From the NCBI GenBank assembly GCA_001643675.2, contig LSRY02000072.1:62001-126000 (forward strand): DNA of 64,000 bases, in the 5' to 3' direction. The position numbers were made by a program, and so were the translations under genes. The notes below the pieces were generated by a model, which was not told where the DNA came from, made no database searches, and saw only the letters and a program-made list of their open reading frames with translations. Of this stretch, positions 11,718-15,211 are shown in pieces (the first letter of the stretch is position 1; every line of letters starts with the position of its first letter). Source of the DNA: Monocercomonoides exilis PA203 (taxonomy: Eukaryota; Protista; Preaxostyla).

Positions 11718-13656
11718 CTAGTCCTTTTCATCCCATCTTAAGCATTTTGTGAGAAGATAAAACAGAATCGCAAGCAAATTGCAGACGGCAAGCAAAATAA
11801 TAAATGTGTTGGCTGAGCCATCAATAACCCCTCCAGGCAGCCATATGTTCATTCTACGACAAAGAAAAAAGCAATGAATAAAAAAAAATCATAAAATAAA
11901 TTATAAATTCGTTTAATATATGCAAAATTGAAATAAAACAAAGAAAAAAAATTAGATATTAATGCCTTGAAACAAAAATACAAATAGAAAAACATTCATT
12001 TGAATGCAAATAACAATTCACCGCATATCCAAAAGCACACCCCCAGCACGACGGGATCATCTGCGCCATCATCATCACACACGTTACAATCGACAAATCT
12101 TTTGCGAGCACGGACAGATGATTGGAATATCTTGAGAGAGACACAGAAAGAGAAGCCAAATGGTTTGTGTGCAAGTCAAGCAGAGTGGAGTGGTAGTGCG
12201 ACGTTGTGTGGAGGAGGAAGAGAGAAAGATCGCCGACGGAACGGAAAAATGGAAAGAGGAACGGAGAAATAAAATGTTTTGTTTGGGCTTTTTTGGAAGA
12301 GAAGGAGTGGATTGTGCTGTCTGAAAAACGGAAAAGAGAGAGAAAGAGAGAGAGAAATTGTACGCATTAATAAAAGTGTATTAAAAAATATTGAAAAAGA
12401 ATAAAGATAATTCGAAATTAAGAAAAAGATTGAAATCAAAGGGAAAAAACTGTGTTTGATGGCAATCACAAATACAGACAAACATATGAAAGCCAATTTC
12501 TATCTTATTCACTTTTATTTCAACAAAATCTACTAATTTTATTTTTTATATTTTTCTATAATTTCACCGCAATCTCTTCCTCCTTCACCAAATTCTATGA
12601 CACACTTGATCTTGGGGTGATTGCTGATATAATTTCTGGAAGAGGCGCCAAACATCTTCTGATTGCATTCACTTTGCGCCTGTCTGCCTCAAATCGCAGA
12701 AGCAGCTCGTCTTGTTCACCAACTCCTTGTAGCGACTGGCTGAGCGAACGGAGGGCAGATAACTGAAATGTCAAAATAATTAGAGTTTTGAGGAATGTGA
12801 TTAAAATGGGAAGATGTTTGATGATAAATTGATGAAAATTTTATTGCGAAAAAAAAGAAAAGAAAGGTTAGGCAAATTTGAATATAAAAGTGTACAGAAG
12901 GAAGACAGGAGAAAAGATTTTTTTAAATTTTCCTCCAAAAAATATGTTGACAATAATTCATACTTCAGTTTCAAATTGTTCAACAAGTGGTTTGAATTGG
13001 ATAACTAATGTATTCAGTAAAGAATAAAGTACATACGCAGGAGATATCATTTTGCTTCTTCGTAAAAATAAATTGGTCGTGTTAGAAGAAGAAGCATTTT
13101 CTCTTTTTAAAGGTGGTTTTGTCTGATGATTCCTTTTGATTGGAGGAAATCGTGGAAGAGAATTATCAAAGACCTTAATATCCTAAAAAATGTGAAATTT
13201 TCCGATAAAATTATAAAAAGTTCGATTATGAATGTATTACTTTTTTCAATGTTCAAAATATCAAACATCTCTATATGTTTCATTTATATCAATCCAAGCT
13301 TGTTCGATAACTGCAGCAAATTGACGGTGAAATGTCACCAAAACTGTCTCTCCAAGTACGAATGATATTGGAATTTCATCTCCATTCTCATTTTTAGAAT
13401 AGCAAATTAGAAAAAGGTATGTATCAAATAGCTCCCACTTTGCGCTTGAATCTTGATTAATAATATCATCAACTGTCAGGGGATGTAAATTGAAAATATA
13501 AGCTAATTTTTTCATCTCTTCACGAGAGGGTTCTCCTTGTAAGTCAATCCATAAAGGTTTTTCTTTTGAAGGACAAGTACATTTCATGTATGAAACAAAA
13601 TCTGTAAAAGAATTAAAGTCAAGAATGTTTTCATCTGAGCATATTGAAATAAGCAT
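11718..13656 (-). CDS. CorA/Mrs2/Alr1-family Mg2+ transporter (multi-exon)
   Basis: N-terminal LWIDLQGEPSREEMKKLAYIFNLHPLTVDDII...AKWELFDTYLF is typical of CorA. The signature WG-M-N is rebuilt across intron 11854-12040 (TGG GG|gtgtgc...tag|A ATG AAC). Two hydrophobic helices flank the motif; TAG stop at 11718-11720. Confidence 0.9.
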
Positions 13657-13826
13657 TTATATCATGATTTTATTTTCTGACCCAATAAAGCAACAATAAC
13701 TATTTTTTGAGATTAAATGAAACGAAATATGGTATTATCAATTGATCTTATAGTTAAGATAAAAGGTGATTAATTTTATATTTACAAACTTTGAGACAAG
13801 TTATATTTCATTTTTTGAATAGACAT

Positions 13827-14415
13827 ATGGCTCATAGACAAGAAAGAAGGCCCGAGGATGAAATCTTTTATTCTGAAAAAGTGTGCGACGATATGTATGA
13901 ATATCGGTTTGTGAGAAATGGATTGCTTTATTTTTAATATAATTGGTGATTTATATTTGAAAAATTGTATTTGAATTATTTTTTGAAGTCATGTAATTTT
14001 ACCGAAAGAAATTGCAGCCAAAGGTGTGTAAATATCCTTAAAAATCATTTTTTGAATTATAACTTTGTAATCAGTTCCAAAAGATCGTCTTATGAGTGAA
14101 GAAGAATGGAGATCTATTGGCATACAGCAATCTCAGGGGTTTGCACTTTTTGAAATTTTTCGAATTTAACAATTTCATCTTTCTTTAGATGGGTATGTTT
14201 TCTTTTATTATCTTGACATAAAGTATTAAATATTAAAAACGTTGTGGTTTTAATTGCTTTTTATCCGCGTATTCAAATTATTGTGAAGGGTATGGTCACT
14301 CATTTTTAATATTTTCTTATTTCATATGTGTTTATTATTTAAAGTTAACTTTGATCGTCATGCACCTGAGCCTCATATAATCCTTTTCAGAAGGCCCCTT
14401 CCAAAAGCATCGTAA
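13827..14415 (+). CDS. CKS1: Cyclin-dependent kinase regulatory subunit Cks1/Suc1 (6 exons, including 4-nt and 1-nt microexons)
   Basis: Exons 13827-13906, 13989-14023, 14075-14138, 14189-14192, 14289 and 14345-14415 give [84 protein letters not shown]. This carries the YEYRHVxLP, LMSExEWRxxGxQQSxGW and HxPEPHxxLFRRP motifs. Not in the ORF track. Confidence 0.95.
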
Positions 14416-15211
14416 TTTCAACAGAATTAACATGCTTTTCATTAAATTATTAATTTCCTCTTTACACAAAAAAAGATAATCACTTCATTTTTATTTATTG
14501 TAATTCATATATATTTTTTGTTTAAAAGTTAATAAAAGGAAATAATTTTTAAAAACTTTTAATTCAATTATGCGTAATAAGAAAGTTCTGATAATGTTAT
14601 CACTGAAATTCTGGTGATTTGCATTTTTCCATCAAAAACATTCCATAAAAATTGGGTGAAAAAAAACCATCACTTATAAATCTTCGTTGTTGCCCTGGAG
14701 TTTCATTAACGAACAAATACATAAAATATATAAACTCATTTCATTTTCATTCCATTAAGATCAAAAATTATAAACTAAACAGAATAGAAACTTTTCTCAT
14801 TTTAACATTTTCATTTAAAGAAACTTAATAAAAATGTAATACATATAAAAATTATAAAAATGGAGATGTATAAAAATGGGAAAAATGCATATAATTCTCA
14901 GAAAGATGACATAAACAAGATGAAAATTTCGACAGCAACAGACAAAAAAAAAGTAAATGGAAAATGATGTGCATTTCATCGAGATTAAGTAAAGCAAGCC
15001 GAGATGATGTAAGTGTAAATTTTTCTCTTAAATTCAAGGTTTAAGTAAAATTCAATGACCATGAAAGTTAAAGGCAATAATAATGGTGGCAGCAAAAAAA
15101 AGAAGACGAAAATTTTGTTGGAAACGAAAATTTTTCAGAAGAAGAAAAAAAACAAGAACAAGAACAAGGCAATTGAAGGGATTAGATTCGGTCTCAAATA
15201 AATTCATTCTG

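Follow-up and report, generated by a model that had tools for sequence, protein, structure and literature searches.

The window analysed here, 64,000 nucleotides of forward strand from the gut protist Monocercomonoides exilis PA203 (contig LSRY02000072.1, positions 62,001 to 126,000), belongs to a nanopore-based assembly of 82.3 Mb in 101 contigs (PMC8767320) and includes a gene whose public protein is labelled M. exilis CKS1. The gene consists of six coding exons of 80, 35, 64, 4, 1, and 71 nt (Table 1), which together give 255 nt in frame with a terminal TAA and encode 84 amino acids, and according to the RNA contigs its transcript runs on to about 14577. Exon 3 ends with the first two bases of a Gly codon (GG/gtttgc at 14138; slashes mark exon-intron boundaries), the ATGG exon (tag/ATGG/gtatgt) contributes the third base of Gly and the conserved Trp codon, and G14289 (gaag/G/gtatgg) opens the Val codon that follows Trp. 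Three introns thus fall within five coding bases and split Gly-Trp-Val as GG/A TGG/G/TT. The bases and coordinates which had been read from the letters for the end of exon 3, the ATGG exon, G14289, and the last exon were all confirmed, together with intron lengths of 50, 96, and 55 nt. The G at 14289 lies in the sole AG-N-GT site (14287-14291) from exon 4 to the last exon and is needed for the reading frame, as computed along the candidate paths.

Two other features were seen in the vicinity. A piece of a CorA-like Mg2+ transporter gene begins on the opposite strand, some 100-170 nt upstream from CKS1, and the two genes may share a short promoter; farther downstream an open frame of 1110 aa combines Kelch repeats with an ephrin-receptor-like cysteine-rich region and is probably a membrane protein.

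Table 1. Positions of CKS1 features and neighbouring genes in the window (1-based).
Feature	Position	Strand	Basis or remark
CorA-like Mg2+ transporter gene piece	13261..13656	-	Pfam E 1e-11
CKS1 5' UTR exon, 3' end	13753..13765	+	matches loose end of RNA contigs X5/X6 before 13821
CKS1 5' UTR intron, 57 nt, GT..AG	13766..13822	+	putative junction, from loose ends of 10-11 letters
CKS1 coding exon 1, 80 nt from ATG	13827..13906	+	RNA joint, GT..AG
CKS1 intron 1, 82 nt	13907..13988	+	RNA contigs
CKS1 coding exon 2, 35 nt	13989..14023	+	RNA contigs
CKS1 intron 2, 51 nt	14024..14074	+	RNA contigs
CKS1 coding exon 3, 64 nt	14075..14138	+	RNA contigs; Pfam CKS positions 28-47
CKS1 intron 3, 50 nt, gtttgc..ttag	14139..14188	+	RNA contigs
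CKS1 4-nt exon ATGG	14189..14192	+	between both sides of RNA joint, X5 and X6
CKS1 intron 4, 96 nt, gtatgt..gaag	14193..14288	+	predicted from conservation in seven genes; no RNA joint of its own
CKS1 1-nt exon G	14289	+	extra G in mRNA; ag/G/gt..g kept in 7/7 genes
CKS1 intron 5, 55 nt, gtatgg..aaag	14290..14344	+	predicted from conservation
CKS1 last coding exon, 71 nt with TAA, aaag/TTAAC	14345..14415	+	Pfam CKS positions 52-68
Open frame, 1110 aa	15850..19182	-	Kelch repeats, cysteine-rich region

Membership in the Cks1/Suc1 family (PF01111) is recognizable from single exons, since exon 3 alone matches the Pfam CKS profile with 28.4 bits (cut-off 27) and the last exon alone with E 4e-4; the latter exon encodes the hinge H-x-P-E-P-H and the last strand and matches residues 59-75 of the human CKS2 chain. 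The spacing from Gly-Trp to H-x-P-E is five residues in all 180 homologs that have the motif, and the window gene acquires this spacing only when the 4-nt exon and a single further base are included, in agreement with the collinearity to the Cks1 motif that had been claimed for inclusion of the G. The M. exilis protein is therefore an ordinary family member in spacing and hinge motif, and its gene structure alone is unusual. The Trp of the 4-nt exon and the Arg of the last exon belong to the phosphate-binding pocket of Cks.

All five public gene models of oxymonad CKS1 examined are wrong. In XP_067718786.1 the G is skipped and the protein of 72 aa goes out of frame; MONOS_11128.1 contains about 25 residues of padding from intron 4, and this old model, to judge from its sequence, also uses intron 5; XP_067720659.1 reads into intron 4; XP_067728362.1 is frameshifted; and in the Streblomastix strix model KAA6377135.1 the Trp and the next five residues are dropped.

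RNA evidence comes from one study and concerns the paralog of the window only. In RNA contigs X5 and X6, which originate from two runs of this study, introns 1 and 2 are removed at GT..AG ends, and position 14138 is linked to 14344 with ATGG between them, G14344 taking the place of the extra G. The mature mRNA thus contains the 4-nt exon and one additional G before TTAAC, which is the cDNA predicted by the sequence-only reading, and this G is a base that under canonical splice sites adjoins neither of the neighbouring exons (two RNA runs, one study). The assembled contigs, from which rare forms drop out and which carry no read counts, contained the included form only and no partially spliced one. 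Among other canonical paths there are 25 stop-free in-frame routes between exon 3 and the last exon; among the paths nearest to the right length only the 4+1 combination yields the sequence observed in RNA. On the genomic side the short-read DNA contig X3 (depth 2.8), which carries the same sample label as the possible source of the assembly, spans 14047-14527 with zero differences from it, so that the missing G by which the sequence-only reading might have been explained as an assembly error was not found.

Two further Cks genes are present in the M. exilis genome (contigs C50 and C13), each with a 4-nt exon ATGG, an internal ag/G/gt site, and a last exon that is one base short. The same layout was revealed in CKS1 of Streblomastix strix (GCA_008636045.1), where the 4-nt exon is CTGG, a synonymous variant, and in three eukaryotes known from metagenome or read assemblies (L008, L009/L010, and L023), whose Cks proteins have the same distinctive residues. 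The proposed check in related oxymonads is thereby answered by seven of seven genes in five organisms, which all keep the 4-nt exon and the ag/G/gt site. The pattern ag/G/gt..g stands at the same place in all seven genes, though the inner parts of the introns show no alignment between genes (mean pairwise z between -0.26 and 0.25), and each of the 21 introns that flank the microexons has canonical GT-AG ends. The base of the 1-nt exon is G in every gene, with no natural substitution, and it completes a Val codon in two genes and a Glu codon in the other five. The lengths of the flanking introns (35-114 nt in the seven genes) are similar to those of the other CKS1 introns (47-86 nt); in 6/7 genes intron 4 exceeds both intron 3 and intron 5 in length, and intron 1 is likewise long. 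The L023 gene has no introns 1 and 2 and has an intron of its own in exon 1, and it keeps the three microexon introns, which are very short there (35, 67, and 40 nt; L023:397-449).

Two side observations concern these relatives. Intron 4 of the C13 paralog possesses a second site, AG-T-GT (L003:1688-1692), whose use as a 1-nt exon would give an in-frame TAA stop. The S. strix gene (L022) contains in-frame TAA codons where Gln is expected, in agreement with the reassigned code of this organism.

Genomic Cks copies of the other eukaryotes examined have an uninterrupted Gly-Trp-X and no introns at the three positions, which suggests, within this small sample, a gain of the three microexon introns in the oxymonad line. 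Exon 3 as a query against JGI metagenomes retrieved six Cks loci of non-oxymonads, in which these introns are absent, and no Blattamonas or Paratrimastix protein was found among the matches listed in the protein searches.

The mature mRNA is alike whether the G comes from 14289, from 14344 (the last base of the AG), or from 14193 (the first base of the donor). Conservation of the internal site across genes favours 14289, from which the extra G would most probably originate. The strength of this argument was estimated with dinucleotide shuffles of the interval, where an AG-N-GT was counted if both resulting introns had 40 nt or more. Under this null the chance of an AG-N-GT site is 0.01-0.08 per gene; for the window gene, whose choice was post hoc, an AG-N-GT..G site appears in the shuffled 152-nt interval with a chance of about 0.01. 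The six other genes serve as independent tests, and the product of their chances is 1.5e-9 with the loosest pattern AG-N-GT and 6e-16 when G at +5 is required.

The most serious competitor is a single intron of 151 nt (14193-14343) with GT..AA ends, cut one base early, so that the G of the final AG remains in the message. It gives an identical mRNA, the contig alignment itself puts the joint at 14344 with GT..AA ends, and the retained base is invariably G, with AA before it in the three M. exilis paralogs, whose final acceptor is aaag in all cases, and in S. strix. However, the base before the final AG varies among the seven genes (A, T, or C in aag, tag, and cag), and a single intron then needs GT..TA ends in two relatives and GT..CA in a third, where in each case a perfect AG is reached one base further on. 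Nor does it account for an internal acceptor-G-donor site in seven of seven unalignable introns, and it is at odds with the GT-AG intron boundaries described as ubiquitous in the M. exilis genome (PMC6759080). This reading is accordingly regarded as improbable. A shifted 5' cut, by which one intron at 14194-14344 leaves the first G of the donor in the message, is even less probable: it produces the same mRNA and the donor GT fixes a G in all species, but the internal ag/G/gt site is again left without explanation and the intron is required to start with TA or TT. To our knowledge, no U2 spliceosome uses such starts routinely. Loss of a G from a GGG run in the nanopore-based assembly, where homopolymer errors are common, or insertion of a G by RNA editing can practically be dismissed, as the short-read DNA contig is identical to the assembly over the region and six other independently assembled genes are without the same base and with the same internal site.

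Thus, mRNA, DNA contig, and conservation of the site together support the claim of a 1-nt exon after a 4-nt exon, and the probability that CKS1 contains a constitutive 1-nt exon in this position, with three canonical short introns removed one by one, is estimated at about 0.93. It is not a zero-length recursive (ratchet) splice site, as the motif at 14289 reads AG-G-GT and a base is retained in the mRNA.

Computed translation indicates that CKS1 without the G, without ATGG, or without both, as well as with any of the three introns kept, runs into an early stop, by which the hinge and the last strand are lost; inclusion of the microexons is therefore predicted to be constitutive. As for the mechanism, the CKS1 introns would be ordinary U2-type GT-AG introns, each of them short and probably recognized across its own length (intron definition). 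They would leave stepwise, since two spliceosomes cannot act simultaneously to the left and to the right of a single base. Neither microexon would ever be recognized as a free exon; once one flanking intron is out, a microexon would be fused to its long neighbour and become the end of a longer exon. One possible order, given only as a suggestion, is that introns 3 and 5, spaced by the longer intron 4, are removed first and intron 4 last.

The splice signals were compared with the snRNAs of the genome. The U1 snRNA gene (G000:C28:313530-313684; L025:1503-1511) has the 5' arm ACAUACCUG, complementary to CAG/GUAUGU, in place of ACUUACCUG, and the U6 has the standard ACAGAGA box. The donor gtatgg after the 1-nt exon pairs with this arm through 5 of its 6 intron bases and through the exon G in position -1, and the latter match may explain why the base of the 1-nt exon stays G. 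T at intron position +4, which matches the U1 arm, occurs in 31 of the 34 donors of the seven Cks genes. G at +5 is present in 20/21 donors flanking the microexons versus 6/13 other introns, the genes being related, and the U1 duplex energy of microexon donors is no different from that of others (p 0.49); for both reasons stronger donors around the microexons are no more than hinted at. The M. exilis genome possesses about 35,000 introns with a mean length of about 120 nt and no minor spliceosome (PMC6759080, PMC8767320), and U1-associated proteins are nearly absent in metamonads according to a survey (PMC6679479), which fits intron definition.

A further candidate 1-nt exon, in this case C (aaag/C/gtttgt), was noticed in genomic DNA in a Rho-type GTPase gene (G000:C14:1936899; L019:1450), and it counts in favour of the 1-nt exon reading of CKS1. 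The segments CCA A/gtttgt, aaag/C/gtttgt, and ag/T GTT TTT GAT AAT TAT are separated there by introns of 76 and 52 nt, and the C, which is obtainable from neither flank, would stand second in ACT, the Thr codon of switch I.

With CKS1, the few lineages that have nuclear one-base exons, namely plants and fungi, are joined by an intron-rich protist of the metamonads. Its three introns within five coding bases, in a gene central to the cell cycle and in at least two named oxymonad genera, provide a compact natural test of minimal exon size and of the removal order of neighbouring introns. The gene inventories of these mitochondrion-less protists may contain more errors of the same kind. A more far-reaching proposal, which is speculative and in our estimation rather unlikely, is that oxymonads as a whole lineage splice exons of 1-4 nt routinely, tandems included, by a spliceosome that works with intron definition alone; it is suggested by the short introns, the U1 5' arm fitted to GUAUGU, and the reported near-absence of U1 proteins. 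If it were true, misannotation would extend to many oxymonad genes, and CKS1 would serve as a minimal natural substrate that imposes a fixed order of intron removal.

In a literature search that covered few subscription journals, no protist nuclear one-base exon, no metamonad case, and no 4+1 tandem were found; the known examples belong to plants and fungi. The plant VPS55 gene contains a 1-nt microexon, rice has tandem microexons of 5 and 12 nt (PMC8831610), and 13 one-base exons were described in Coprinopsis cinerea (PMC12230235). These cases resemble CKS1 in that one-base exons and adjacent microexons occur there and are routinely misannotated; however, the VPS55 exon is alternatively spliced in early-branching plants (PMC8831610), and the rice tandem is larger than the 4+1 of CKS1. 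The one-nucleotide exon of Fusarium CYP621A (PMC12940212) has the same AGGGT site, short introns, a phase mismatch, a site conserved in orthologs, and RNA reads over the joint; in contrast to CKS1 it lies in an unrelated gene and lineage, takes the second position of a Gly codon, and, within the part of the description covered here, has no neighbouring microexon. The closest counterpart is Arabidopsis APC11, also a small cell-cycle gene, where substituting the base in minigenes proved a single-nucleotide exon (PMC4674806), whereas the CKS1 exon is supported by RNA and conservation. The APC11 exon is constitutive and is situated between two spliceosomal introns, as is predicted for that of CKS1; both are needed for the frame and were missed by annotation, and intron definition with stepwise removal was proposed for APC11 too (PMC4674806); the APC11 exon is an A, while that of M. 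exilis is a G after a 4-nt exon. One-base exons are very rare yet already known in plants and fungi, and CKS1 is most probably a further case.
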